The notes under the pieces were generated by a model. It was not told where the DNA came from. It made no database searches and was given only the letters and a program-made list of their open reading frames with translations. Positions 17,501-64,000 of a stretch of 64,000 nucleotides of DNA are shown here, in pieces; the stretch's first letter is position 1, and every line of letters starts with the position of its first letter. This DNA is from Chlorokybus atmophyticus (Eukaryota; Plantae; Mesostigma and Chlorokybus algae). The position numbers and the translations under genes were made by a program. The stretch lies in assembly GCA_009103225.1 (NCBI GenBank), contig RHPI01000575.1, positions 295,527 through 359,526 of the forward strand, given 5' to 3'.

Positions 17501-18600
17501 CAGCGTACTCCACGGCAATCGCCATGGAGCAGCCAGGACACGCAACTGTTGCAGACCAAGCGAGGGCGTTGGCGCAACAACTGAGGGGGGTAATCGCCCC
17601 GCTGCTGCCTCCTTTGGTCGAAGACATGTTTGAGGATCAACGCGATGCAGGGAGAGGGTACCTCACCCCGCAAGGGGACACCACACAACGAGGAGGAGCT
17701 GGTATGGTGGGGGAGCAACAACTCCGTACCGCACTCATCCGGCAAGCAGTCATGTTGCACAGGCCTGAGGGCAACACAAGACAGATGATGGGGATGCAAG
17801 AGGGCGGCGCCGCTCGAGCCCGTCTCGTGACATGGCTCGTTGCTAATCACCCTGCTGTCCCCCTGCTTGCCTTTGGCAACCGAGCATCATGGTTGGGGGC
17901 ATTCGTTCGTTCGCTGCGACAAGCATACGACGAGGCTGCCACCACGGCCCCGGACACGCTGGAGGGAGTGCAAGAGGCAATGCTGCGGCTGCCAGGGGTG
18001 GAAGCCGCACGGCAACGGCGGCGCATCGCCATTGCTCATGAGCTACACGCACAGCAGACTGACCTCCAGCGCACCCTACGTGCTCGATGTGGGAGTGGTA
18101 CAAGGAAGGTGGGATGCCTACATGGCAGGGATCTTGCGAGTCCCCACCATTACTCACGACATGCGGCGACAGCTACTACGCGCCATAAACCAGCAGCCCA
18201 TGCCTCAATATCATCATTGGACCGACACGGACACCGAGCCCACGGCCACGTGGGAAGGGACATTGGTCAGAGAAGCGGCTCATGCTGTTCGATGGACGTA
18301 CGCCGCGGAGCAAGCTGAACGCGAGGCAGGCCCACAAACACCGGGTCCGCCGGGGTTTCCTCCACAGCCATTGGGGACACCCGCGGGCATGATTCCAGCT
18401 TTGCAGAGGCGTCATCCACCTGCGCCGCCACCACAACCAGCGCCGGAACCTCCAGCACCGAGGCCCCCCCGTGTCTACCAACCACCACGACAAGGTCGGT
18501 TCGGCAGAGGGAGAGGGCAAGGAGGGGGTTCTCCGGACCCAGCAGGCAGAGGAGCTCTGGCTGCCATGCGCTCAGCACCTCCAGCTGAGACAACTGAGTC
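14556..18600 (+). pseudogene. gag: gag region: capsid-like part, two CCHC knuckles and a long low-complexity/unknown extension; in-frame stop at 15138-15140, frameshifts near 15800 and 18080
   Basis: 'LKDLYAALRRTFLPQTNSKVEELRRFRRKPHEDP' and knuckles 'CHRCGRHGHYQKEC', 'CDHCHKTGHLETVC'. Confidence 0.85.
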
Positions 18601-18679
18601 AGAGGTACAGACACCTCACATGAAGAGGCTGCGTATCGACGCCAATGCTGCCATGGTGGCCAACCAAGGCAAGCACATC

Positions 18680-19050
18680 ACCATCAACGGTCTGGCACCC
18701 AAGCGGGTAATGTTGGACACCGGAGTACAGCCTGTCATCATTGGGCGCTTCCTCGCGCGGTCCCTCGGCATTACCAGCTCCGACTTGGTGCCTTGCCCGT
18801 ACGTGTTGGACACTGCCACAGGTAGCCGAGATAAGGTGATGGGAGTCACCAGGGAGGCCTTTTGCATTCGGTTGACAGGGCTGGACCCAACCCACACGAC
18901 CGAGATCGTCCAGCAATGTGTGGTTACCAATGCCGGCTCCTTCGACTTTTTGCTCGGGCAGGACTTCAACTTCCCTGTGGGCATGGGCCTCGCCTGCTGG
19001 ACAGAGCGAGCGTGGTTTCGGCCACATTGGGATGAGGATGATGGAGAGGT
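18680..19050 (+). CDS. Retropepsin aspartic protease domain of pol
   Basis: 'RVMLDTGVQPVIIG' and 'FDFLLGQDF' in ORF 17840-20074. Confidence 0.85.
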
Positions 19051-19453
19051 ACAGGGTTTCCTGCCTCTCGAGTTGGTCTCGCGCACGCGCGCCCAACGCA
19101 AAATGGCTGCCATGGCCACACGCAGCCACGCCCGCACCCGGAAGGCTGTAATGGCCACATACGACGGCGCTCGGACGCAAGTCGCTGCTGGTGCCACGGC
19201 CCCGTGTCGAACCGTCGACTCCTCTCCCATCCGTTATAACGAGGAGCAGGAGGATGCCACCGTGGAAGTAGCATTACAAGACCCATCTGAACGGCGCTGG
19301 CGCGCACAGGTGGACGCACACATCTTGCTCAGCCATCCACTGATCACCACGCGCTTCCCCAACTACCGAAGCCACGTCAAGGTGCAGGACCACCATATGG
19401 TGGCCATCGGAGTGGTGGAGTTCCACACCTTTCGCAGGCAACAGGGCATCGCA

Positions 19454-20395
19454 GTGTTGGAGCTGTTTGGAGGCATTGGCAGTGGTCTTGCTGCGGTCCT
19501 CGACACGGGCGTGAAGGTTGTCAAATACTATTACTGCGACCCAGACCCACACGCGCAAACAGTCCTCAAGCACCACTTACGCCAACTCCACGCCAGGTAT
19601 CCACGTCAACTACCCCTCTCGGCGTTGCAAGGCAGCCTTAAAGCATTGCCACAGGACATCTGGCTGATCACTGAAGATCACCTACTGTCCCTCGGCAACG
19701 TCGACCTGTTAATAGCTGGATGGGAATGCCAAGGGCACTCCAGGGCAGGCAAGGGGCAAGGCCTCGAAAACCCTCGCTCCGGGCTGTTCTGGGAGCTGAT
19801 GAGGATCATCCACCTCCTTCAACACCACCAGATCTCCAGACCCCTGGGGTACGTCATCGAAAATGTGCATTTAGAGGACGACAAGCGTCCGCACGTGGCC
19901 TCTAGCTACGGACAAGTTTGCTCCATTCTGGGGCACCCACTCAAGGTGAACGCGGCACGACATGGCTCGCGCGCGCATCGTGTACGTGCCAAATGGACAA
20001 ACTTGGCCACCGTGGAGGAACTCATGACCGCCGAACACGCGCAGCGCCTGGCCGCGCAACCTGTTGGTCGATAACATCCTTGACCCCGGCCGCACAGCAC
20101 AACCTGTCCTGCGTCATGACCACAACCACTTCTACCAGTGCAATCAGCCCGGTGAGCCCCGTCGCGCACTCCTCACATTGGTGTCCTACCCGGGCTCCTA
20201 CGCATTTCACAACGGTGGTGACGGGATGGTATTCGATGCGACCACCAACAGGCTGGAAGAACCCAACGCACGCGAACGCGAACGCGCCATGGGATTCTTC
20301 CCCAAGAGCATCACAGGTTCATCGCTGCCGGACAGTCAGCAATGCCAGCTGCTTGGTCGCGCCATGGACCAGAACAGCATGGTATGGTTGCTGGA
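19454..20395 (+). CDS. C5 cytosine DNA methyltransferase domain (DNMT3-like) inside pol; frameshift near 20065
   Basis: Motif I 'VLELFGGIGSG', II 'YYYCDPD', IV 'IAGWECQGHS', VI 'YVIENV', VIII 'AHRVRAKWTNL', IX 'EPNARERERAMGF', X 'LLGRAMD'. Confidence 0.92.
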
Positions 20396-28467: not shown

Positions 28468-29843
28468 CATTGGGACAGTTGGACACATGCAAGCAAGCAT
28501 GCAAAAAAGCAGCCATACCATGTGCAAGCATATAGCAGGTATGGAGTGAAGAAAAAACGGATGTACACCACCCCTCGGCTAAGAATACTTATTAATACAC
28601 CAATTGTCTTTGAAAGGTATGTGGCCATAGATTGTGGTTTAAGATAAAAAATCACGAGTTTATGAGATTGTCTTGCAATCTCAATGGTTGATCACACCCA
28701 AAGATAAAAATCGTTTGAAGATGATTGGTTGGATAAATGTTAAGTGAGATCACATGTTACAAGTTAGTTGGCCGCCTTCGATTACACTAGGGTCTAAACA
28801 ACTTGTGCCAGAGGCACCATTGCTGGAGACACCCACCACTCCAGAGGAGTAGATAAGCTACAAGCGTATACAGAAATTGTTGGCACGCTACCAGGTATAA
28901 AACTTGGGGCAATGTGCCCATGTACCATTGGGACAGTTGGACACATGCAAGCAAGCATGCAAAAAAGCAGCCATACCATGTGCAAGCATATAGCAGGTAT
29001 GGAGTGAAGAAAAAACGGATGTACACCACCCCTCGGCTAAGAATACTTATTAATACACCAATTGTCTTTGAAAGGTATGTGGCCATAGATTGTGGTTTAA
29101 GATAAAAGATCACGAGTTTATGAGATTGTCTTGCAATCTCAATGGTTGATCACACCCAAAGATAAAAATCGTTTGAAGATGATTGGTTGGATAAATGTTA
29201 AGTGAGATCACATGTTACAAGTTAGTTGGCCGCCTTCGATTACACTAGGGTCTAAACAACTTGTGCCAGAGGCACCATTGCTGGAGACACCCACCACTCC
29301 AGAGGAGTAGATAAGCTACAAGCGTATACAGAAATTGTTGGCACGCTACCAGGTATAAAACTTGGGGCAATGTGCCCATGTACCATTGGGACAGTTGGAC
29401 ACATGCAAGCAAGCATGCAAAAAAGCAGCCATACCATGTGCAAGCATATAGCAGGTATGGAGTGAAGAAAAAACGGATGTACACCACCCCTCGGCTAAGA
29501 ATACTTATTAATACACCAATTGTCTTTGAAAGGTATGTGGCCATAGATTGTGGTTTAAGATAAAAAATCACGAGTTTATGAGATTGTCTTGCAATCTCAA
29601 TGGTTGATCACACCCAAAGATAAAAATCGTTTGAAGATGATTGGTTGGATAAATGTTAAGTGAGATCACATGTTACAAGTTAGTTGGCCGCCTTCGATTA
29701 CACTAGGGTCTAAACAACTTGTGCCAGAGGCACCATTGCTGGAGACACCCACCACTCCAGAGGAGTAGATAAGCTACAAGCGTATACAGAAATTGTTGGC
29801 ACGCTACCAGGTATAAAACTTGGGGCAATGTGCCCATGTACCA
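28468..29843. repeat. Exact tandem triplication of a 458-bp unit
   Basis: 'cattgggacagttggacac' recurs at 28468, 28926 and 29384; the units are nearly identical. Confidence 0.95.
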
Positions 29844-38309: not shown

Positions 38310-39612
38310 CACAATAACGGTCTGTGATGTATATTGCTTATCCTATTATCAATGTGTAAGTACGCATGACATGTATGAATTGAAATAAGTTGTTGGCAAC
38401 AACTCTTTATCAAACATTATGATACAAATTGTTTTGCATCATGTAAAGCTGGTACACATGCATGCTTGTTTATGAATACGTGCAAATGCATTCATGTTTG
38501 TCAGTCACAATATCAACGACATGCGGAGGTACTTAAATCAGGAAATGCACCCATCATTACACTTGAGCACGCATGACAGACATCATGATTCAACCCCTGT
38601 TGTTTTCTTTCTCCTTTCCACACAACATGCAAGTATGCGACCGTTTAACACTATTATCAACTACAATGCATATCCAACTACAACTACTACTACTACAACT
38701 ACAACTACAATGCATACACGAGCGGGTCCGACATTACTGCGCGCGCTCTGGCCAAACTGGGGATCAACCGCAATTAGCGCTTGATAAGCAGCAATAACAA
38801 GTTTACATTTGCAACAACAAGCATAACAACACCAATAACAACCCTCCTACCCACCCTACCTTTACACTACTACCTAACGGCCACGCCAATGGTGTAAAAA
38901 AGTTAAAGCAACAACCATACTGTATGTGTCTGGCATGATATCANNNNNNNNNNNNNNNNNGGGGGAGGGGGGGGAGGTCTCACAATAACGGTCTGTGATG
39001 TATATTGCTTATCCTATTATCAATGTGTAAGTACGCATGACATGTATGAATTGAAATAAGTTGTTGGCAACAATTCTTTATCAAACATTATGATACAAAT
39101 TGTTTTGCATCATGTAAAGCTGGTACACATGCATGCTCGTTTATACATACGTGCAAATGCATTCATGTTTGTCAGTCACAATATCAACGACATGCGGACG
39201 TACTTAAATCAGGAAATGCACCCATCATTACACTTGAGCACGCATGACAGACATCATGATTCAATCCCTGTTGTTTTCTTTCTCCTTTTTACACAACATG
39301 CAAGTATGCGACCGTTTAACACTATAATCAACTACAATGCATATCCAACTACAACTACTACTACTACAACTACAACTACAATGCATACATGAGCGGGTCC
39401 GACATTACTGCGCGCGCTCTGGCCAAACTGGGGATCAACCGCAATTAGCGCTTGATAAGCAGCAATAACAAGTTTACATTTGCAACAACAAGCATAACAA
39501 CACCAATAACAACCCTCCTACCCACCCTACCTTTACACTACTACCTAACGGCCACGCCAATGGTGTAAAAAAGTTAAAGCAACAACCATACTGTATGTGT
39601 CTGGCATGATAT
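38310..39612. repeat. Two ~632-bp near-identical copies (38310-38941, 38981-39612) flanking an N-gap (38944-38960)
   Basis: Same sequence with roughly ten substitutions, offset 671 bp. Confidence 0.85.
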
Positions 39613-44746: not shown

Positions 44747-45203
44747 GCGTATCTCAACATGCTTGCTGATGTGTTGCGTGCATTTGGCCCCTTTTTATAA
44801 AAAATTTGCTACAGTTTGCTGTATATAGCAGCTGTTATGCATGCACGTAGTGTGAACCATGCGTATCTCAACATGCTTGCTGGTGTGTTGCGTGCATTTA
44901 GCCCCTTATCAAAAAGTATTTGCTACAGTTTGCTGTATATAGCAGCTGTTATGCATGCACGTAGTGTGAACCATGCGTATCTCAACATGCTTGCTGGTGT
45001 GTTGCGTGCATTTGGCCCCTCTCCGAAAGGAGTTTGCTACAGTTTGCTGTATATAACAACTGTTATGCATGCACGTAGTGTGAACCATGTGTATCTGAAC
45101 ATGCTTGCTGGTGTGTTGCGTGCATTTGGCCCCTCTCCGAAAAGAGTTTGCTATAGTTTGCTATATAGGCTGTAGCAAATGTTATGCATGCACGTAGTGT
45201 GAA
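44747..45203. repeat. Tandem repeat, 4 x 114 bp (minisatellite)
   Basis: Unit starts at 44747, 44861, 44975 and 45089. Confidence 0.93.
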
Positions 45204-48839: not shown

Positions 48840-51800
48840 CTATCCAGCTCCTGCCGGCGTCAATCTCCGGCAAGCCAACTCGTGGCTTCTTGTCAGCGCG
48901 CTGATAAGCGTTCGCGGCTCAACAGGTTTGCAAACATAGCTGCAAACACATCAGATAAGCAACGCGCAAGGCGAACAACAAGGTCACATGACCGACGGCA
49001 TGGGTGTAACCACCGCGCACGCGCGCATGTATATAAAGATCTAAGATACTACTGTGTGTGTATACATGTGCGTGTCTGCGGCCACATGCATACATACTGC
49101 GGTACACTTACAAGTCCATTCCAGCGGCCAAACACGCATCAATCTCATCACGCATGGCTGCCGCAGTCACCGCGACGATGACAGGCAAATTGCCCTCTTG
49201 CCTGATGGCCTGCGTGGCTTCGGGGCCGTCGCATAAAGGCTGCAAACCAAAAGATGTTAGTTGCGCACACAGCGCAACTACCAGCAGCAAAACCAGAAAC
49301 ATGCTACATTTCCAGTGGTCAACTAACACAACACATTCACATACCATGTGGTTGTCCATCAAGATGACCTGTCAGCCAGAGACCAGTCAGTGGGCCAGTT
49401 ATGTGCGTTGCAAGGCAGGCTTGTGCCCAAATCGACAACACCAGCACCCCAAACGTACATCATATCGCTGCTGCTGTGTAGCTGCAATGGCCTCCAAGCC
49501 GTTGGCGCAGATGTCGGATTGATAACCCAGCCTGGAAAGCATTCTTCTGAGCACCTGCTGGTTGATGACGTTGTCCTGCGCCGAAGTTGCTGCGTGTCAA
49601 AGCACGGGAAGAGAAGCGCACATGCAACACTCAACACGTGACTGTATGATCGCATTCATGGCTTCAACATTTGAACTCGTACCTCAGCAACGAGGATGCG
49701 AAGCGGGTAGCGAGAGGCCATTGTCTCATCGAATACTGGGATAGAGGCTTGACGTGTGTGCACGCGCGGCGAATTTGGTTTGCCGCTCAGCACGCATTGT
49801 TGCAGAGCATTGAACAACTGCGCACCGCCGAGTATGAGCAGCGCTTGTGAGAACATCCGACCATGTGCGCGTGAGCACACACACAAACACACCTGAGAAG
49901 AGCGCAGCGGCTTGAAAAGGTGCTCCGCTTCAGTGTTGATAGCCTCTTGGCGAACCCCGCCTTGGGGTGTGAGCACAATCAGCTTGCATGCAGCGCCCAC
50001 CTTGGCTATGTCTTGAGGAGTTACCACTTGCGCATCCTTAAGCAGCAAACAGCATGGCACATGTCAGTCGTGCACGCTTGTACCGATGCAAGGCTCTAAG
50101 TCATATGCTTGACACCGTCTGCGCACGCTTCACTTACCAGAATGCACGCAGCAGGACGCCGGTTTTGCAGCATATCCAAGGCATGATCCACGGATGATGC
50201 ATGCAACGGGTGGCAGCCCCATCGTTCAAGAAGCGAGGAAGCAACCCTTTCACTCGCCGGTGCGGTCAGCTGTGAGTGGTCAATAAATGCAACACAAGCA
50301 CAGCATCAGAGGTGATAAGAGGGACTTTCTGAGGAAGCCAAGGCATGGATGCCTTGGCTTCCTCCAATGGCAAGCATAAGAGTGATGGTATCATTACCAG
50401 CAGCACATGGCAGCCAGCGAAGCAGGCTATATGAGTTTGATCTGCACTCGGCCTTCTAACATCCCCTTCCTTAGCTGGGCCCACTTCCAACTTGACATTG
50501 AATGAGAATGTTGCCCCTGTACAGGGTGGTGTTAGTGTCACAAGACATAGTACCTTTGTTCAGCATACACGTCCATACAACGTTCAAGAGCTGGCTGCTG
50601 ACCTGGTTTCTCCTCAGGGTTGCTTTCTATCCAAACTCTTCCACCCTGTCCGTGAAGCATACATCAGTATGCATCTCATCAGCTGAACTCAATATCAGGG
50701 GCAGGCATGTACTCAGTAGTACGCTACTGTGTTGGCCTAGTGTACCTACCATCAGAGTCGCAAGCTTTGCACAGATAGCAAGGCCCAACCCTGCAAGAAC
50801 AGGTGACATGATGTGTAACAATAAGCCAATATCACGACACGATTGGCAACACAAAGATGGGATACAAGGCAAAAAAGCTATTGCGCCCAATGTCTCTCAC
50901 CTGTTCCTGCGAACCTGAACACGCATGCACGCACCCGTGAGTTGACACACCAAAAGGTCCCCCACACGCACTTCAAGTACATGCAATGTTCAGAACCAAT
51001 CAGCAACTCACCTGCGAGTTGTGGATGTGTCGACTTGACTGAAAGCAGTAAACAGCACATGCTGGAATTCTGGAGGGTAGTGACAGAAGGAGCTGAGCTC
51101 AGTACCAGATTGATAGTGCAAAGCACAGCAGTCTTATGTACAAGTGATGCGGTTTGTTCCACTGCACCTAGAGGAACGCCAATGCCGGTGTCGCGCACGG
51201 AAAACTTGAGGACCAACTCTGGCGCAGCTGGTGTAGAGGAGGATGCGTGCTGCTTGGTAGCCGCCTCCAATGCAAGTTGCTCATGATCAACTTCCACTTC
51301 AACGACAACCGCTCCTTCAGAAGTGAACTGTACCCACGGCGGTTCAGGCTTGGTCGCCACAATTGGCATTTGGGTGCTACATATTGCGATTATGTTCTGG
51401 CCGAAACGTACCTTTACTGCATTGCTGACCAGGTTGACCAGGATCTGAACATATGAAAGAGTCACCGTAAGCCTCAACGTGTTGTAGAAAACAGACAATG
51501 GTGCCACACTTGCAGTACTGCGTTGCGACTGAAGCTGCACACCAACCTGGCGTAACCTGCTGACATCACCGCACAGCGATGCGGGGACATCAGGCTCCAC
51601 ACGGTAAGCCAGATCCAGCCCTTTGTCAGCGGCTTGCGTGGCCACGAGATCCAGGCTATCTTCGACGCATCCAACCACATCGAACACAGACTTCTCCAAC
51701 ATCAGCTTGCCCGCCTCAATCTTAGAAAAGTCTGCAGATGACGCATCCAGCAAACAACATTCACGCACACGTTCAAGACGTAGCCAACACGACATAACCA

Positions 51801-54520
51801 CACGCATCAGCGCCTTACCTAGGATGTCGTTCACAAGCGTCAATAGCTGGTCACTTGAGCTGCATAAACCAACCAATCAGGCAGGCTGCAGTGCTTTACG
51901 GCGGCCTGCATCAAGCAGATGGTGCTGCTGCTGACCTGCGGATAATTGTAGCATACATACGTTGCTCCTCTGCGAGAGGCTGCGTTTCGAGCAAACAATA
52001 AGCGTAACCCAGGATTGCATTAAGCGGCGTCCTGCAAAATTCAAGGCCTTCAATGCGACAGACAACTCACAAATTACAACACGAGCACATTCTAAACTGA
52101 CAGCTCGTAACAGCTGGCAAATGCAACCTGCACCAACACGCTCCACCTACCGAAGCTCGTGCGACATCTGCAGGCGCAAATGGGAAACGTGTGAGCTGAA
52201 ACAACCCATGACTGGTTGACATGTTCATAATGCAGCGGGTTGATCATTGCAAACGTTGCACTTACATTGGCCAAGAATTGTGCCTTAGCACCAGCAGCTC
52301 GCGTGGCTGCTTCCAGCGCTACTCGAAGTGCTTCTTCTGCTTGTTTGCGATCTGTGACATCCGTCACGGTACCTGCAGGCCACGACATGCCAGGGTACTG
52401 TTATTGAGTTTGGCATGCAACACACGATGGTCATGTTTAAGAGTGCCTGATTTCAACTGCGTACCTGACATGCGTATTGGTTTGCCATCCTGATCGCGAA
52501 TCGCTGAGCCTCGACCGCGAAACCACTTGTACACGCCACTCTTGTGTTTCAGTCGGAACTCACAATCTAGCCAGCCAACACAGTTATAACAGCCAGCCGT
52601 GCCCACGCGGACACTGAGAAGAGCCTGAACTCAGCTTACCATACTCAGCTCCTTGCTCAAGGTGATCGCGTAGTGCCTCCTCAACACGCGGCGCATCCTC
52701 GGGATGAATTCCATATGAGTTATTCAGGTCAATGGGGACACCGTCCAAATCAAAAATCTGCAGCCATCAGCATCATCATATACACATACATACAGTTGCA
52801 ACTGTTGAGCGTACTGCGATTACCGAGCAAACGCTACATGATCACTGCTAATAACCGCATGAACCTGATCTGTGGTTTCCCAAGTCTCGCCCACAGCGAA
52901 GCCCAACAACTCAAGGTATCGCTTAGATCGATAATCCTGCAAAGTTGCGAGTTTTCAGGCATCAGGCATGCAGCAAGTGACTGCCGGAAAGTATAACAGT
53001 CACGCAGACAGTCCTACCTTGCCATTCACCATGTCTATGTCCCACCTGGGCATCGCACACACAAAGTTATGGCGGATGCGCAGGTTGCAATGAGAAAAAC
53101 ATACCACCACAAAGCCTTAGGTATGAAACAGTACTCACATGCCATCTGTGCTGCCACTGACTGCGAGCGACATCCTTTCCTCGCTCACTTGCAATGCCTC
53201 TTGTGTCTGCACATAACATGGCAGTGGTCAAGCTGTCAGACAAAGCCGTTGCTGGAGCCATTTCCAGTGATTTCCCTGCAATGCGTCTGATTTGATAACA
53301 GTCACATCACTGCTGCTAGGGAAAGCCAGAGATTGTTCAATTGAGAGTGTCTGCAACAGTGTAACTCAACAACTAAACTTGCTTTTCACGAGTTGACTAT
53401 GCCACGCAATTGCACGCACCTTCTGCATTTCAGTGTAGTCCACGTCGACTCCGTGCCATATCTGCGCACCTGATGCATCCTTTGGCTGCGCTATCGTGCG
53501 GCATCTGACCCACACAACCTGAGTACGACAATCATCCCAAAGCTCAGTCTATGGTTGTTAACTACGCAAACTGCAAAACATGACAAAGAAGCTCACCTCT
53601 CCATTGGGCCGCAAGTCACGATGCTTAAAGTCCAGAGGCTTGAGAGTTTTCCCGCACTCCTCGAGCTGACGGTAAAACTCCGCCTGCACAGTCATGAGGG
53701 TAGCACATCGTTAATAATCAACGAAGGTGAATTATCAAGAATAAGTACCAAGAAGCCTAAATTTGGCCTTCTCTCCCAACAGCAGTTAACAGCTGAACAA
53801 CATTGTGGGCTTGGTGGTTTTAACATCGCATGTGATCAGGAGGTTTACTTTATCATCGGGATGGAAATGGTCGCCCCGCTCCAGACTTTCTGGCGTGTGG
53901 CCAGTGTGTTCGAGTGCGCCCGCCGAAACAAACAGCAGGTTTACTTTCCCCGTCGCATCAACCCTGGCTTTGTACATCCCACCGGGCATCGCTTCCGCAA
54001 ACCGCAACAGGTCCAACTCTGCCTCCCGCAGCTTGCATTCCAGATCCCTGATTACATCCGCCTAGCAGATGATAAAAAGCATGAGGTTGAACCTTCAACA
54101 CCAACTTCAGAATTATTTCTATGGCTGCCTATCAACTCACCTGGCGATAGATGGTTCTTGTTTCAACAGCCCGTGTGGCAATCCACGACATCACAGACGC
54201 CGCATTGGCGCTAACGACATGAGCCGCTTGAAGGATCCACATGAGACACTGGGAGTACTGACTGATGGGAGCCTTTCTGTGATTTTTGGCCGCTAACGCA
54301 TTGCGCACCGCAGCTTGAGCCATTTGTAACAGCGTAACTCCAGCCACTGCAGGTTGTAACATCGCTTATTGCAAGTTAGTGTGCGTACACACTTGCTGTA
54401 AGCAACAAACAAGACTGAACGTACCTGCAATGAGAATATGCACTGTAATGCCTGCACGCACAAGCTCCGAAACCGTGCAGCTGCATGCTGGACACTCCAC
54501 AGCTGCAGCTTCCATCTGTG
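48840..54520 (-). CDS. Hybrid sensor histidine kinase: PAS - PAS/PAC - HisKA - HATPase - degenerate REC - REC; 5' end uncertain
   Basis: 'FAEAMPGGMY...HFHPDD', 'HPEDAPRVEEALRDHL', 'EFRLKHKSGVYKWFRGRG', 'KAQFLAN|MSHELR', 'DFSKIEAGKL', 'NLVSNAVK|FT', 'VRDTGIG', 'GLGLAIC', 'RILVAE|DNVINQQVL', 'ILMD', 'AVTAAA', 'KPVE'. Confidence 0.92.
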
Positions 54521-56653
54521 TGAGCATGTTTCCGTTCCGGTTAGCAAATACAGGTGTATGCTAACCATCGACGTTAGCAAACTGCACGTACAAAACAGTG
54601 GCTACAGTCGTCACTGCAATCCACCAGCATACGAGCAAAACCACAAGCAAGAATTGGCAAAGTTTAACACGCACGCAAGGCCAAGCTGGCTCACTAGCGC
54701 TCACCTGTGCAACTCAGAATGGACGAATGGGGACAATTGCAATGCCTGTCGACCCTGGCTGCCAGGGCGCAGCAATAGAGATGAATGTTCTCTAACTGCT
54801 TTATTTGCTTTCACACAGCTATGGCTCTACTTTCAACTGAGCGCTACTAAGCATGCCAATGAGCTCATTAAGCTGCCATAGCAAGCAGCTGGCTCACTGC
54901 CAATATCACACAAATCCGCCCACGCAATGCGGCCAACATATTTTTACGCCACCTGAAGCCCTAAAAGCTTAAGCCGTAAGCCGTAAAAGCTTAAGCCTTC
55001 GGTCCATTTTGTGCATGCTGCCGATGTACATGCTTCACTGCAAAGCTTGCGTGGTTAGGAGAGGGAGTGAAGCTCGCCCTCCAGCAACAGCTATGACACA
55101 ATGGGACGAGGCTCTGCTGCTGCTCTCTCCTACAGTATCCTGCCTGCCTCTCCCTCCCCGTACACCAACACCGCCGGAGGCGGCGGCGGGCAGCTTACAG
55201 CTGTAAGCAGACTCAGCTAAACCCTAGCCCCGCTCCACACCTCCGCCTCCGCCGCCTCCTCCTCCTCCTTAGCCGCCGCGGCCCTGCTTAACAGACAGTA
55301 CCTCGCGACTACTGCGCTCCCCGGCACGCACACCAGCGCCCCGTGCCTATAACGGGACGGTTACTGACGCTGCTAAGCCGTGCCGTCACAATCACCGGCT
55401 ATAAACATATCCGGGCACTGAACGTTCATTCGTGCCGAGTTGCGCCCGTTTCAGGACACGTTCTTGACTACCTGGTACATGTGTACTGCAATGTGGGCCT
55501 CTATTGCCCACTCAGTGCCAGTGGCAGCTTAATGCAAGTCTGACACTGACAGTCATCGATTGCGACGGCAGGGAAACCGTTTAGATGCACACGGCAGAGC
55601 GGATACGGTGCGCGTGACAGTGACATTGTGACACGGAGTTGACGTTGTAACGTTAAGGGTGCGTGACCCGCGGATTGAAAATTAGGCATGCTCGTACTGA
55701 GTGCAAGCCAATATGGCCGTGTACTATTGGTTGAGAATGACTATTCACGGACGGCTGCCTCAATGACGGCTCTGTGACCGTCTTTCTGACGGCCCGTGTC
55801 AAAGGCTGACAGAGCCTCATAGGCGCCTTCAATCAATCAATGCAGCAGAGGACCAGGTAGTACCGCTGGCGGAGGTACTACCTTGCTTGGTCACCCGCAG
55901 GAAAATCGCTGACAAGGATACCATCGCAGGTATCGCGGTACTACACTGACAGGGTCTGTGTCCCGTAGCCTACCGTAAATAGTGTGAGAGACAGATCCTG
56001 TCGTGATGCAGAGTCACAGTGGCATGCAATGCACGCTTGAACTTGTCCATTCTTTGGCCTTTAGCCTTTGCACCACACCCGTTAACATACCACAAAAGTT
56101 TAGGGTTTGGTACGCGCGCGGTACAGGCGGTGCCGCAGACGCGTACTGTACTTTAGTGAACTGAACTGAACTGAACAGCGTACTGCTCATGCCTTGGTAA
56201 ATTTCTTTCCGGCTTGGCAGGCCTTCTGGCGATTGTTATTGTTGGCGGCGGCGGCAGCGGCGGCGTGGAGGAGCAGGAGGTGGGAAGAAGGTGGGGAGCA
56301 GAGGAGGGTCAAATAAGCAGGGATTTATTTGCATAGCTTAACGCCCAGAAGAAGGTGGCGGGGGGTGAAAAGGGGTCGGTGGGTTGTGAAGAGGAGGAGG
56401 AGGAGGGAGGTAGGGCGCCGTTAGAGCAGGGGGTGCGGAGGAGGGCGGGAAGATATGCCAATTCACCTGCTTGGACAGGTGGGGAGGAAGACATGACAAT
56501 CAACTGGCACGGTTCAACTAATGTATGCTCGCACCGTCCGCTCTTACTAGATGCATCTGCTGTGCAGATTGTACGCATGTTTGCACAGTATGTTGTTTGG
56601 AGAAGTTTATGTACATTGAGCTTGATGTGTAGCATACATTTGCAGGGCCGAAA

Positions 56654-59600
56654 ATGCAGTCTTCATCAGCTCATGACTCACTCAACATTACAAGCGCACA
56701 ACGAGTCGTTGTGGAGCGTTTGGGGTTACAAACAACGGAGGAGGCACGCGCACAACTACACGCATTGCAGCAAGGCACACCAGAATGGTTGACAGCTCGG
56801 GTTCGTCGCTTGACTGCGTCCAACTTCGCCGCTGCCATCAATAATTATCCCGCTATGAATGCACAAACACTAGCAACCTACATGCTTGCAAAGATCAAAG
56901 GTGAGTCCGCATTCGCTTCTCTTCTCCTGACCATCTCGCGCAATGGTTACATATTCACATATGCAACTCTCCTCATATGTGTGCAGACCCTAGCGATGAA
57001 CCGCCGCGCACCCCGGCAATGGTCTTTGGGATCAACAATGAAGAAATAGCGGCGCAAGCATACTATGCACATGTGCAAGCGCAAGTAGAAGCAAGTGTGG
57101 GTTTGGAGATGCGTAAGACGGGGTTGCACGTGCACTCGAGGCACCATTGGTTGGCTGCTAGTCCTGACCGCGTTGTCTCGCACAACGATGAATTGTGGTT
57201 GTTGGAGGTGAAGTGCACCTTGGACCCTCAACCATGGAGTGCATTGCCGAATCATGTGGTGGATCAAGTGGTCGGCCAAATGGCCATCACGGGGTACAAG
57301 CGTTGCGACATCATTTGCTGGAGCAAATCCGGCAAGTACAGCGTGTTCAGCCTGCTCTATGATGAATGGCATAGGCGACATTGGGGCTGCACGCTGCTTC
57401 CCAAGCTTCGGCATTTTTACTTTACTTTCTTTGCTCCGCACGCGGCGGTGTTGTTGGAGCCGCCGCGACAACATCAAGACGCATGTCCTACTGCGCCACA
57501 ACGCAAGTGGAGTGCGCAAATAGATACGCCTCGCATCGTCGAGGAGCTTAGGAGCATGAGAACTTCTGGTATGTATCACATACAGTAGATGCATCTGAGA
57601 GGTGCATCTGTCCCTGTGCATCTACACGGATGCATCTACTCGTTACAGGCACATGCGTCCGCACAGTAGATGCATCTCGTTGAATGTTTTGCATAGATGC
57701 TTCAACTAGTTGTAAGGTAGTAAATCGTGTGACTGTGGTAACTTTGTATGCTCACTTCACCGCTTCACAGTGCCTACCTCACATACCAAGCCTCTTCCCC
57801 CGCAAGACATCCCCCCCTCCCCCCCTTGTCACCAGCAGGTGTATCTGTGAGAAATGTGGTTGCATGGATGCATCTACTGCGTGATTGACATGCTTTCATG
57901 TCACATGCATGTAAGACAACGGGGCAAGTGACTGAGTATTTACTTGGCAGCTCATAGTCCCTTTTGCAGGAGATTACAACCTACCTGCCCTCGCTGTAGG
58001 GCAATGCGTGCGCTTGAAAACAAAGTTTCAACAACGTGGGACAATCCATGCCGTGCAACCAAACGGTAAAGTGGTAGTCGCTTGGGAGTACACGGGTGGT
58101 TTGCCGAGCACGAAAGCCATTGCAGCCACATCCATACATGCGTCAATTGCAAGTGAGTCGTTGATGGAATGCCTTGTCTTGGTAATGGTGCAAGCTTAAT
58201 GATCATTACGCCTCGCCTCGTAGGTGAACACAACACTCCCAAACACGAGGGTGACAAAGTGCAAGTGATTGGAGGCTGTCACGTGGGCATAATTGCTGAG
58301 GTGGTGAGATTGGGACCACTACAAAGCCATGTGTGTTTGGAAGGCGCATCCATTGTGCAGATACGCAACAAAATGTTGCAACACATATCACAAGGTTCGT
58401 GTATGTTTTATCATTACGCACATGCCCATCGAGTGACCATAGCATGTTGCTTAAAGACACATTGCACACCGCTTGTTGTCACTCAAAGTGCTGCATCCGA
58501 AGGTCACAATACGTCTTGCAGAATTAGATGATGACAGTGAACCGCATGTGCAACATGACACTTTGGAGGAGCATGTTGTAAAGGTGACCGAGTTCGAGCA
58601 ATGGTTGCACGAGTACCAAGTGAAGAATGGAGTTGATGTGGTTGTTGTACAACGGCGGCAAGCACGTGGCGATGCCCCCTACATCAAGGCGCGCACGTTG
58701 TATGCTTGTCGAAGGTATGTATTTGGTTGCTAGTAAACAGCAGATGCATCTATTGTGTGCCTGCATGTCGGGGCATTCGTTAGGATGCATCTAGCTGGAT
58801 GCATCTACTGGTTGTTGGGATACCCACAATCTCTCACCGCTTGTTTAGAGGGGATGCACGGCAATCAAGGCAGCTGTCACATCACAAGCCCATTGATTCT
58901 GCCAAAGTTGGGTGTCGGTTCAGCATGACAATGACGGAATACGTGGACCAAGAGGAGACATGCTACGTGCGTATAGCAACCCGGCACACCAACCACGAGC
59001 CAGGTATATGATAATGTGTTGCCTGCTTGTCTTACATGCAAACACGCCGATACGTTAAGAGATGTATCAGCTTGACTTCGTGGTAGGCTCTGCTGAGGAT
59101 CAAAAGTACCTGCTACCGCATCCAGGACTCCGTGAGGAGACGCGCATGTTGTTGGAGTTGGGACTTAAGCCACAAACGGTGTTGAACAGTGAGTTGATCA
59201 CAGTAGTTGTGCATGGTGCCATTGTGTAACAACCTCGAGCGCGAGTTACTAGAGGTTCAATGTGATGGTGGGCTGATCTATGCCAATGTGTACAGTGCTC
59301 GATCGTAGAAGCACTCAATTTGATGGAGTGACATCCACGATGCGGGAGGACTATTCCAATCGACGCTGTAGACTTAGCAAAGAAGACATCAACAACATCT
59401 ACAAAGAAATGAGGAGGGCTAAAGCAATTGCCCCCTCAGATGCTGTTGCTGTTGCCAAGCTAGTAAACTCTCTACCAGATGGCATTGTTTTGCATTACAC
59501 GGCACCCGGTGTTGATGAGACACACGAACAGCACACACCTTTCGTCATCATTATGCAAACAGAGTTTCAAAAACGCATGCTGGGGCAATTTGGCTCTAAC

Positions 59601-62275
59601 ACGGTGCTCTTAGACGCTACAGGCGGCACAAACTGTTGGGGCTATCAGTTTTGGGCAATGGTGGTCAAAGACGACTTTGGAAACGGTACGTGTGCGCATG
59701 GAGCTGTACAGATGCATCTAGCTGTTGGCATACTACGTGCTATGTGTTGCTTGCTTGGAATAGTCTGCATGTATACAACTCGAAGGCACGAACGCATTCA
59801 ACAAAATGACATCAAGCGCATTCACCTTATGTAGTGCCCGCACATGTAATTGGACGAGTGCATGTGACTCTCACATACCTTAAGCTTCAATCCACGGTTA
59901 GGTGCATTCACTGGTGTTGTGGATGAAGCGCGCATAAAAGACCAATCCACCTTTTGTAGGGGTTCCGGTAGCTTTCATGGTGAGCGAGCACGAAGATTCT
60001 GAAACAGTGAAGCTGTTTCTCAATACAGTATACGCGCGCATCCCAAACTTCAAGCCTCGTTGTGTCATGATGGACAAGTCCCTAGCGGAGATGAAAGCGG
60101 TCGAGGAGATCGGCTCGACAGTGTTGCTGTGCTACTTTCACTTGCTACAAGACTGGGAACGCTTTTTGCGCAAGGGGACAACCCATGTCGTAGGCAAAAA
60201 GATGCGCTCGGATGTGCTGGCAAGCGTGAAGCTGCTTAAGCGGTCCGGCAGTGTGGACCTGTTTGCACACAGAGTAGAAGCGTTCATGCAGGAGTATGCT
60301 GATTACGCGGAGGTGATCAAGTATCTCAAGCAAGAATGGCTTCCTGATCGAGACAAGTCAATAAAGTCATAAATTACAGTTATAAGCATTCTAGTTTCAC
60401 TATGGAACACGCATGTTTGTACGCACTTACAAGCTGTTGCTAGATGCATCTACTGCTGAAACGCGTTAGCGCACTAGAATGGCCTCAATCTTATAGTACC
60501 GTGGTTTGCATGCAGACAAATGGGCTGATTGTGGACGTCAATTTGAGCACGAAGGCATTGAAACCAACAACCTATTGGAAAGGTTCTTTCATAGTTTGAA
60601 GTACACTTTCCTTGGGGGCAAAGTCAACCGCTGCATTAGCGATTTGATTGTTAAGTTGCTTGAAGACGTTGTTCCTCACTTTATCCGCGAGCGCAAGCTC
60701 AAGGTGTCTGGACGTGGCGGCAAGAACGAGGCACTGCGCGCTCATGAGCGTAGAGCTCATGAAGTCGACTACCTTGTCAAGAGTGATAAAGTGCAGATTA
60801 CTGATGCCACCATAGGCATGTGCATGGTTGCCTCCGTACCAGACGGCACGAGTGTCGTCTCAGAGCGCTGCTACACTGGATGTATTGCGGAGCTGACTTG
60901 TGAATGCCCTAGCACAGACACGGCATATGCCAAATTTTGCAAGCATATGGAGGCGGCATTATTAGTGCATCCGTTTACCTCTGAGATGCGGACGGCCGCG
61001 GCGGATTATCTGTTGCGTAACAACGGCATACGTTTGCAGCCAAACGGTCTCATAGCCGAGGTGGCTAGCATGCTAGACGCCAACTTGATGTTCACTTGCG
61101 ATCTCGCGAACACCTTCTGTACCTGCGCCGATCACGATTTCAATGGCGTATGCTGTCACTTGCTTGCTGCAGCTCGGGCGAGCCAATCAGCTGACGTATA
61201 CGCGGGTAAGTCCATTACAACAGATGCATCTGATGTATTTGGTTGTCATTCATGTATGTGTAACACGACTGTTGTGTCACACATACGTACGCACAGAACT
61301 GAAGCTTAGGAATGAAGAGGAGCCAACACTCAACCTTCGGCGATCGCCACATGCACCAAGCCGTCAAGACCCGCGTCTTGACCCGCTTACTGACGATGTC
61401 GACCCTTCCATCGATTGCGCACGCAGCGTGTTGGATGACTTGCATGACGGCCACTCAAGTACGGTGCATAAGTTGCTGACATGTAGCTTATTGATCATGC
61501 ATATGCCATTGCATACAAGTGCGGTTGCAATTATGGCTTGCTTGCATTACGTGTATAAATACTCACACACGGCATGTTGGTTTTAGGCGCGGAGCATGAC
61601 GAGGACTTGCGCTGCAGCATCCTGACATCGGTATCCACCATCAAGCAGCGTGTCAAGCATATGTCACGTTCCACAGCTGCTGAGGTGGATGAGTCTCTTA
61701 AGGCTCTCATTCAGCAGTTAGACGCTTCCTTGCCACGGCTTTTTACAACTATCCGGCGACAACATAAGCAATGGAGACGGCAGCAATCGGACAGAGTTCA
61801 ACGGTCGTTGTATAACCGCACTACACCTAACTCTGCACAAGAAGCTCGAGGTGCAGAGGCACCAACAAATGTGGGTGGCTTTCACAAGACTCAGGGACCT
61901 GGAAGACCCAGAGCTCAAAGTCGCAACGACTTTGGTGCTTACCAGCGCGATGGAGCTGGTAAAAAGGCGTATCCCCTCAGACGCAAAAGAAACAAGAACG
62001 AAAACCCTCAGCACGCTGCAGTGCCTCCGGATGTTACAACAAGCAAGGGTGGTGCCAAGCGTAAGGTCAAAAACGTCTCGGCTAGGGCAGAGGCAAACGC
62101 CTCCACCCGTTGTGCATCACAGCCCGTGCCCACAGTTACGACACCGCAACGCCCCATTTTCTCCACTCAGGTGTACAGCCCAATGCCAGGCTTCTCTCCG
62201 GCAGCAAAGACGACTTCGCAAGGGGTGCGGGGCAACATGCGGCCTACCAACTTGAACTTCGATGCAGCAACATGA
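56654..62275 (+). CDS. Predicted spliced fusion: YqaJ/lambda-exonuclease + KOW-like repeats + WRKY/FAR1-like zinc DNA-binding domain + MULE DDE transposase + 2 SWIM fingers; start uncertain
   Basis: YqaJ 'QGTPEWLTARVRRLTAS', 'LAASPDR', 'LEVKC', 'QVVGQM'. MULE 'VLLDATGGTN', 'VMMDKS', 'LCYFH', 'ETNNLLERFF'. SWIM 'CECP...FCKHM' and 'CTCA...VCCHL'. GT-AG junctions keep frame at all but one checked intron. Confidence 0.8.
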
Positions 62276-62570
62276 ATATCATAAAGTGGTGGTAGAGGAG
62301 GTGTGCTGACTGCTCATACATCCGCACATGAACTCAACTTTCTCTTGCAACTTCGACCACAACCAACTGTAGGTGCTTCTAACCTCTATAACCTCATGAG
62401 CATGCGGTTTATATATGGCGACAAACTCAAGTCATCCGAGAGGTGAATGACGAGAAGTGGCAAATGTTCTTGTTTACACTTGCACAAACAGTTCATTCAT
62501 GAATGCTATTGTTGGTTACAACATGCACGATGCTTGATGATGTCTACTTAGATGCAAAAGCCACGGTTTA

Positions 62571-63020
62571 GGTAGATGCATCTGCAGGACAACCAGCGAG
62601 ATCTACTTAGATGCATCCCGTTCTGGGTCTAGTTAGATGCATCTTGTCATACCCTGCCAATTTGCTGAAGAAACCTCCTCTAAGGCAGGCTTTGAGCAAG
62701 ACCCTGCCTGGTAAAAAGTTAGGGTCTAGGTAGATGCATCTGCTGAACAATCAGCGAGATGTACTTAGATGCATCCCGTTTTGGGTCTAGCTAGATGCAT
62801 CAAGTCATACCCTGCCAATTTGCGGACGAAACCGCCTCTAAGGCAGGCTTTGAGCAAGACCAAGCCTAATAGAAAGTCAGGGTCTTGTTAGATGCATCTA
62901 CTGACTTAGTGACGTCTTTTTCGATGCATCTCGTTATACCCAAGCCAAATTGCTGATGAAACCGCCTCCCAAGCACGCTTTGAGCCAGACCCTGCCTAAT
63001 TAGAAACCCGGGTTTGGGTA
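62571..63020. repeat. 158-bp tandem repeat (two full units plus one diverged), each carrying 2-3 GATGCATC palindromes
   Basis: Units start at 62571, 62729 and about 62887. Confidence 0.9.
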
Positions 63021-63119
63021 AATGCAACCATAAAGATGCATCTTGTTGGATGCATCTACAGCAAAGCTGAGTGCTACGTGTGGGAACAGATGCATCTACT
63101 GCAAAGCAACATGTCAAGG

Positions 63120-64000
63120 CTACTCAGAGTCGGAGGCCGCCTTGCCCACTCGCCTCACATGCTTTTTGAAACACTTGTTCTCGCAAAAGAAGCGCCATCC
63201 GCCCTTCTCTTTTTCACAGCACCCGCAAAACCAAGGTGTACTGTTGGGGCACAAGCCACAACGCTTGCGTGCCGCCTGCCGTTCCATCCCAGTCAACTTG
63301 CGGCCTTTCTCGTTGTACACAAGTTTGCAAAGCCTATGCTCCTGAACGCACACACACATACGCACACAATGAGCGGCATGGGCAGCATCCCCACAACATG
63401 CACGACTGAACTTGATTGCTCAATGGCAGGGGTATATAGTTACAGCATGTTGCCGCTGACACTCACATGCCCTTGCGTATCTTTCAGAGTCAGGTGCACT
63501 TCCTTCAAATTATGATCGATAGGCTTGACAATGACCTGCTTGTCCCCCTCGCGAGATGCCTTCTTGACCGACCGCCCGCCACCGGCGGCGACAGCTTTCT
63601 GCATTCACAACTTTTGCATCTAAGGCATATTACAAGTTCACATAATGAAAATGATATCCACAACACTCACCGTTGGAGCCTCTTGTTGTTTTGTAGATGC
63701 ATCAGCACCAGTATTATCTGCCCTTTTAGCACGCTTGCGGCCGGCCTTGTTCTTCTGCTGCATTACATATTGATGTTTAGCAACACATATACGCATGTCG
63801 CATACGTAAGCAGATACTCACCGTGGGAACCTCTGCCTCTGCCTCTGCCTCCGCCTCAACACCCTCATCGACTTTGACTTTAGCAGCGCGCTTGCGACCT
63901 GTTCGGCACTTCTCCTGCGTAACAAACGTGGGTAAGGATGTTACAATGGCGCCGTTTGCAAGTATGCACGCGACCAATTTTGACAAATACATACACAAGC
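63120..64000 (-). CDS. 3' exons of a convergent gene: basic NLS-like repeats and a C-terminal piggyBac-type Cys-rich zinc finger; 5' part outside the window
   Basis: Phase-0 exons 'EKCRTGRKRAAKVKVDEG...VPT', 'QKNKAGRKRAKRAD...APT', 'KAVAAGGG...TQGH', 'EHRLCKL...RKRCGLCPNSTPWFCGCCEKEKGGWRFFCENKCFKKH...*'. Confidence 0.7.

Follow-up and report, generated by a model that had tools for sequence, protein, structure and literature searches.

Why should one 8-bp palindrome, GATGCATC, occur 23 times in and around a single transposase gene, nearly always in non-coding sequence? The gene encodes a Mutator-like element (MULE) transposase joined to a YqaJ nuclease, and lies towards the end of a stretch of DNA from the alga Chlorokybus atmophyticus (contig RHPI01000575.1, forward-strand positions 295,527 to 359,526). 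We call this whole stretch, 64,000 nucleotides long, the window, and give all positions in its coordinates. An initial annotation had picked out the palindrome as an element-specific word seeded through introns and intergenic DNA, and had proposed that it belongs to an independently evolved self-recognition system. Our tentative answer, held at a little under even confidence, is that the copies are protein-binding sites of the dimer type, grouped in a homotypic cluster, through which the element would recognise itself.

Abundance and form of the motif

The window holds 24 exact copies of the 8-mer, and 23 of them fall within 56550-63703, at exactly the positions first listed for them. Outside the locus there is a single copy, at 53472; its flanks are unrelated, and one such copy agrees with chance. 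In dinucleotide shuffles, the window as a whole had 1.83 copies on average and 6 at most. From order 1-3 Markov models, for which the remaining 56.5 kb served as training sequence, 0.20-0.23 copies are expected per 7.25 kb. The enrichment claimed at first thus survives a composition-corrected null within the window (23 copies against ~0.2 expected). GATGCATC is the commonest 8-mer of the region; in other 7.25-kb blocks of the window the top non-simple 8-mer has 4-10 copies, which were traced to longer duplications. When the 12-mer palindrome TAGATGCATCTA was sought with up to two mismatches, 25 matches were found in the locus and none in the other 56.5 kb.

With its flanks the site spans about 12 bp (TAGATG|CATCTA) and extends weakly towards CAGTAGATGCATCTACTG. 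The core is preceded by A in 17 of the 23 copies and followed by T in 19, so the form AGATGCATCT is indeed the usual one, as had been reported. Folding 40 half-sites together gives a symmetric profile in which the GATG core is invariant, A stands at -5 in 32/40 and T at -6 in 23/40, with weak extension towards CAGTAGATG. Such a profile would be the form expected of a homodimer site on duplex DNA. A literature search for GATGCATC returned nothing but primers and unrelated uses.

Positions of the copies

The copies are placed here relative to a transposase gene model that was built by hand and checked by translation.

56654 to 62275, + strand: transposase gene, 12 exons, 1318-aa open reading frame (ORF) with a single terminal stop
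Exons 1-6: 56654-56900, 56987-57568, 57970-58152, 58224-58394, 58522-58714, 58849-59003
Exons 7-12: 59087-59188, 59296-59685, 59960-60352, 60516-61205, 61297-61458, 61587-62275

Motif copies were located as follows.

56548 to 56559: copy TAGATGCATCTG, 104 bp upstream of the ATG, in the promoter or 5′ untranslated region (UTR)
57586 to 57705: proximal cluster of intron 2, exact copies at 57588, 57629 and 57669, spaced 41 and 40 bp
57601, ~57614 and 57696: degenerate copies in the same cluster
57865 to 57876: distal copy of intron 2, TGGATGCATCTA(CTG)
58741 to 58807: cluster of three copies in intron 5 (58743, 58784, 58798), of which 58784 and 58798 make up a 14-bp micro-tandem
59709 to 59720: copy of intron 8, 25 nt downstream of the 5′ splice site
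60441 to 60452: copy of intron 9, a perfect TAGATGCATCTA and the only perfect one in the gene body
61221 to 61232: copy of intron 10, 17 nt downstream of the 5′ splice site
62573 to 63098: eleven spacer copies, between the convergent stop codons at 62275 and 63120 (844-bp spacer)
63694 to 63705: copy that would code G-A-D-A-S-T, within a putative convergent-gene exon

One copy is therefore upstream of the gene, 10 are intronic, 11 are in the 3′ spacer and one is in the putative convergent-gene exon. The upstream copy possibly lies inside a 5′UTR intron, which would start at GTATGC (56523) and run to 56645. Intron 2 has four of the intronic copies, intron 5 three, and introns 8, 9 and 10 one each. 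The seven introns first reported thus come down to five; the larger number needs one-mismatch copies in introns 4 and 6, which stand at background frequency. Six of the 11 introns have no exact copy, and their GT-AG splice sites are normal. Avoidance of coding sequence is strong: transposase exons have no copy in 3,959 bp, whereas the non-coding part, at 2,661 bp, has 22 (P=2e-9). The statement that all but one of the copies are non-coding was borne out, the exception being the copy at 63696.

Neighbouring copies are repeatedly 40-41 bp apart, or about four helical turns (57588-57669, 58743-58784 and 63049-63089), and no 40-bp tandem repeat was detectable at this spacing. A 14-mer that is a degenerate form of the motif, CTTAGATGCAAAAG, is found at the start of the spacer array (62547-62560, + strand) and again, inverted, in an intron of the convergent gene (63611-63624, − strand).

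Relatedness and constraint of the copies

Every intron and the spacer were compared with the window by blastn. The only matches were 14-16 nt long and centred on the motif, except for a 158-bp tandem repeat of the spacer and one 25-nt double site. Since the copies share merely 14-16 nt, they are not remnants of inserted elements or pieces of a longer repeat. Cores with one mismatch number 5 in the locus, where ~3 are expected from the background rate; they are not in excess, so exact copies far outnumber decayed ones.

62556 to 63030: 158-bp tandem repeat of three units, the first two full and the last diverged

The repeat allows the core to be compared with its immediate surroundings. Units 1 and 2 each carry three motif copies and unit 3 carries two. 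Between units 1 and 2, core columns are invariant in 24/24 cases and other columns in 115/134 (Fisher P=0.035); across all three units the figures are 16/16 and 76/114 (Fisher P=0.0026). Core invariance, together with the lack of an excess of decayed copies, argues for purifying selection on the core and not for neutral decay.

The 158-bp units also have a second conserved block, with CCAAT (CCTGCCAATTTGC ... GGCAGGCTTTGAGCAAGACC; 62650-62710, 62808-62868 and 62938-63000), which may be another cis element. The ratio of observed to expected CpG is uniform across the window, at ~0.75, and is therefore uninformative as a methylation footprint.

The transposase and its finger

The encoded protein has a YqaJ nuclease, two small barrels, a WRKY/FAR1-like finger, a MULE/ZSWIM RNaseH-like DDE core and a SWIM domain. 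Pfam calls YqaJ in exon 2 (1e-12), ZSWIM1-3_RNaseH-like (PF21056) in exons 8-9 (29.1 bits, cutoff 27.2) and, after the catalytic core, SWIM (PF04434) in exon 10 (21.3 bits, cutoff 19.6); the MULE family PF10551 scores 20.8 bits, under its 27.6 cutoff. The DDE triad is intact, its D (LLDATGG), D (MMDKS) and E (NNLLERF) aligning with those of relatives.

58522 to 59003, + strand: C..C..H..H finger (YACRRG .. VGCRF .. RHTNH), in exons 5-6

A WRKY/FAR1-type finger layout is usual in MULE transposases. Pfam does not call the finger found here, so the type is assigned by pattern only; its Cys and His positions are kept in two relatives (P0004 and P0025). The finger region corresponds to about aa 395-545 of the protein. 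We regard it as the candidate DNA-binding domain of the transposase itself.

60353 to 60515, + strand: intron 9, 163 nt, with ACAAGT at the donor position and ACAA at both edges

Alignment with relatives requires that EWLPDRDKWADCGR be contiguous, and therefore that exactly 163 nt be removed here. Either the intron is non-canonical or mutated, in which case the gene copy would be defective, or the segment was inserted recently and 4 bp were duplicated.

The convergent gene

63120 to 64000, − strand: convergent gene, at least four exons, cut by the window end

Its N-terminal exons are rich in K and R, and its C-terminal exon (63342-63120) is rich in Cys. No match was found in Pfam or PDB, and no homologue was found beside related transposases. 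That this gene belongs to the element, as the self-recognition proposal implied, is unproven and found no support here. An AlphaFold model from the single sequence had a predicted local distance difference test score (pLDDT) of 52.8 and, being unusable, was not used. Two successive exons (63671-63757 and 63822-63916, − strand) look like duplicates of each other; both are K/R-rich and both end ...PT followed by GTGAGT, and the second in reading order contains the motif copy at 63696.

Relatives and ends of the element

The closest proteins, found with HMMER among 1.84 billion representatives, are 30-36% identical to the transposase. A homologue search with the 270-aa ORF of exon 10 gave no match, and neither did protein-guided scans of metagenome and viral contigs. 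The contigs of the relatives are compact and intronless. YqaJ and transposase are fused there in one 1504-aa protein (L002:8001-12515), encoded by overlapping adjacent ORFs (L001:995-4010), or convergent (L125:574-4416); L128:1-5123 is a further relative locus of this clade. Contigs L125 and L128 end in terminal inverted repeats (TIRs) of 30 bp and 46 bp, the 30-bp one perhaps being partly an assembly k-mer effect. A YqaJ gene beside or fused to the transposase, and relatives that end in TIRs, point to a real and mobile MULE clade that carries a YqaJ nuclease, and by its encoded protein the window holds an intron-rich member of it. A literature search for YqaJ with MULE found nothing relevant to the association.

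No inverted repeat other than the motif itself joins 50000-56653 to 62276-64000, and no TIR pair was found inside the window; the right end of the element is probably beyond it. In the relatives' contigs (L001, L002 and L123-L128), GATGCATC forms no clusters and no k-mer is both private and enriched. DNA pattern scans, for three clustered motifs in metagenome contigs and for two in viral contigs, found only unrelated tandem or coding repeats, without the AGATGCATCT flanks and without a MULE. Three IMG/VR contigs (L206, L214 and L196, two of them giant-virus bins) have 12-22 occurrences of GATGCATC, spaced by multiples of 9, 18, 36 or 90 nt; these evidently belong to a coding repeat and have nothing to do with the motif of the window.

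Proposed self-recognition and its alternatives

Proteins that read short motifs on their own transposons are known. VANC21 binds YAGTATTAY in the introns and in the intergenic and terminal non-coding regions of VANDAL21, where the motif is often found as tandem repeats (PMC5735166). In the cases of TnpA and the AtMu1 transposase, the protein binds cognate motifs that occur in clusters, and it activates its own element (preprint 10.64898/2026.08.24.746577).

For the locus studied here we infer a similar arrangement. A sequence-specific protein would bind the ~12-bp double-stranded site as a dimer, and selection would keep the cluster of sites in the non-coding parts of the YqaJ-MULE locus (the upstream site, five introns and the 3′ spacer). 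A protein made by the element could then find high-density clusters that are present only on the element, and its binding would keep the element transcribed or unsilenced, in the VANC or TnpA mode, or would load the transposase. Candidate readers are the WRKY/FAR1-type finger of the transposase and the Cys-rich product of the convergent gene. The copies are spread through the gene body and are not confined to the ends, which fits the VANC mode better than transposase loading. Part of what had been proposed is supported: within the window the motif is private to the locus, kept out of the transposase exons, partly borne by tandem repeats and marked by signs of constraint, and its anatomy matches that of the VANC21 targets of Hosaka et al. 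2017 (PMC5735166). The most specific version, in which an algal YqaJ-MULE has a self-recognition or anti-silencing system that arose separately from Arabidopsis VANC, with the finger or a new Cys-rich partner dimerising on the seeded 12-bp palindrome and so marking the element for activation, is in our judgement doubtful.

Several observations weigh against self-recognition. The evidence is from one locus, and no second copy, subfamily or close relative was retrieved; the compact, intronless relatives, at 30-36% identity, are without a private motif. With no TIR pair inside the window, and none of the 9-11-bp target-site duplications that go with MULEs, the motif domain can only be taken to be the interior of the element. 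About 6 of the 23 copies are products of the 158-bp duplication and so are not independent. Intron 9 is without a canonical donor, so that this gene copy may be defective. Lastly, the first copy is 17, 19, 25 and 28 nt past the 5′ splice site in introns 10, 2, 8 and 5, that is, in four of the five motif-bearing introns, and such proximity (permutation P=0.011, post hoc) is not predicted by a DNA-binding model.

This last point raises the alternative that the motif acts in RNA. GAUGCAUC, in the introns and 3′UTR of the pre-mRNA, would be bound as an intronic splicing enhancer near the 5′ splice site, or the copies would pair and so fold the long introns, bringing their splice sites close to each other. 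The splice-site bias would be explained, the upstream copy lies 27 nt past the possible 5′UTR donor, and every gene-body copy belongs to sequence that is transcribed and non-coding. Folding of intron 2 and of the spacer is also far better than that of shuffles (z-scores -4.0 and -6.5), although any repeated self-complementary word gives such low fold energies automatically. The site is symmetric in its flanks on both sides, which a site for an RNA-binding protein does not need, and the perfect arms are 4-6 nt long, too short for hairpins. The stop codon is followed by eleven copies in tandem arrays, a further copy precedes the ATG by 104 bp, the motif-free introns manage with normal splice sites, and Rfam has no family match. 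We consider a role in RNA unlikely.

The copies might instead be a neutral and functionless by-product of a 13-14-bp minisatellite unit (GGATGCATCTACT) and of the 158-bp repeat, multiplied by slippage or unequal exchange and scattered by short, templated insertions in the course of repair. Micro-tandems of 13-15 bp do occur (57588-57629, 58784-58798 and 63035-63049), several copies are accounted for by the 158-bp repeat, and intron 9, flanked by 4-bp direct repeats, could be an insertion. At least 12 copies, however, are in unrelated flanking sequence, and in the tandem units a divergence of 12-33% in the flanks has left the cores unchanged. One-mismatch copies, left by decay, are not in excess, and in the other 56.5 kb there is no 12-mer. 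All this makes a neutral origin distinctly unlikely.

Decidedly improbable, too, is that the sites serve a host factor, either as an intragenic enhancer cluster of a domesticated transposase gene or as the target of a host repressor that recognises the element. Host transcription factors that act as dimers typically have their palindromic sites in clusters, and with neither TIRs nor a second copy seen, the status of the locus as a transposon depends on its protein. That protein nevertheless has an intact DDE triad and relatives that are TIR-bounded and mobile, which makes domestication less likely. The target of a repressor should disappear over time, and not accumulate and stay conserved, and no 12-mer is near host genes in the window.

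Two further candidates were rejected, an introner or miniature-element origin because the introns have only 14-16 nt in common, and a hairpin or cruciform because the perfect palindrome arms are so short.

Other repeats and reading frames

Elsewhere in the window we noted a duplication ~671 bp apart with (CAACTA)n-like runs (38658-39373) and tandem repeats with periods of ~458 bp (28484-29440) and ~114 bp (44759-45101). A 744-aa ORF at 17840-20071 was compared with 8000 word-sharing candidates and had no protein match at E<=1e-20, a surprising result should it be a retrotransposon pol.

Comparison with known systems

Element-private motif arrays with element-encoded readers have so far been documented mainly in Arabidopsis (VANC, TnpA and AtMu1). 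If self-recognition is the true reading here, a clean and very dense case in a distant lineage would suggest that transposons have repeatedly adopted the strategy of placing docking sites in their own non-coding DNA. The palindromic architecture of the site and the unusual, nuclease-fused transposase are distinctive, and with one 12-bp site and two candidate readers the locus would be a simple test system. The positional bias towards 5′ splice sites, if real, would be a possible link between such motifs and the splicing of transposon transcripts.

Introner elements resemble the locus in that several introns of one gene share sequence, and the edges of intron 9 have a short direct repeat. They differ in that the introns here share only 14-16 nt, the other introns have neither ends in common nor TIRs nor target-site duplications, and about half of the copies lie outside introns.

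In AtMu1/MuDR, a MULE transposase with an N-terminal zinc finger binds and activates its own element; the finger of the present transposase is a candidate for the same role. The known AtMu1/MuDR sites are in TIRs, whereas the sites here are internal and no TIRs were identified in the window.

Motif clusters in maize En/Spm are subterminal. TnpA of En-Spm (CACTA) is comparable in that an element protein reads clustered short motifs and their density gives specificity (10.64898/2026.08.24.746577). Its clusters are at the element termini, whereas the copies described here are distributed over gene body and 3′ spacer, and the superfamily differs.

In anatomy the locus resembles the VANC21/VANDAL21 anti-silencing system of Arabidopsis. 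The YAGTATTAY motif of that system is asymmetric and arrayed in one orientation, whereas the present motif is palindromic; the organism is different, no VANC-like gene was recognised and the transposase has a YqaJ nuclease. Both are of the Mutator superfamily, and both have a short motif, private to the element (here judged within the window), that is dense in introns, intergenic DNA and other non-coding parts and is partly carried and multiplied by tandem repeats, in our case the 158-bp repeat and the 14-bp micro-tandems (Arabidopsis; PMC5735166, PMC10398659).

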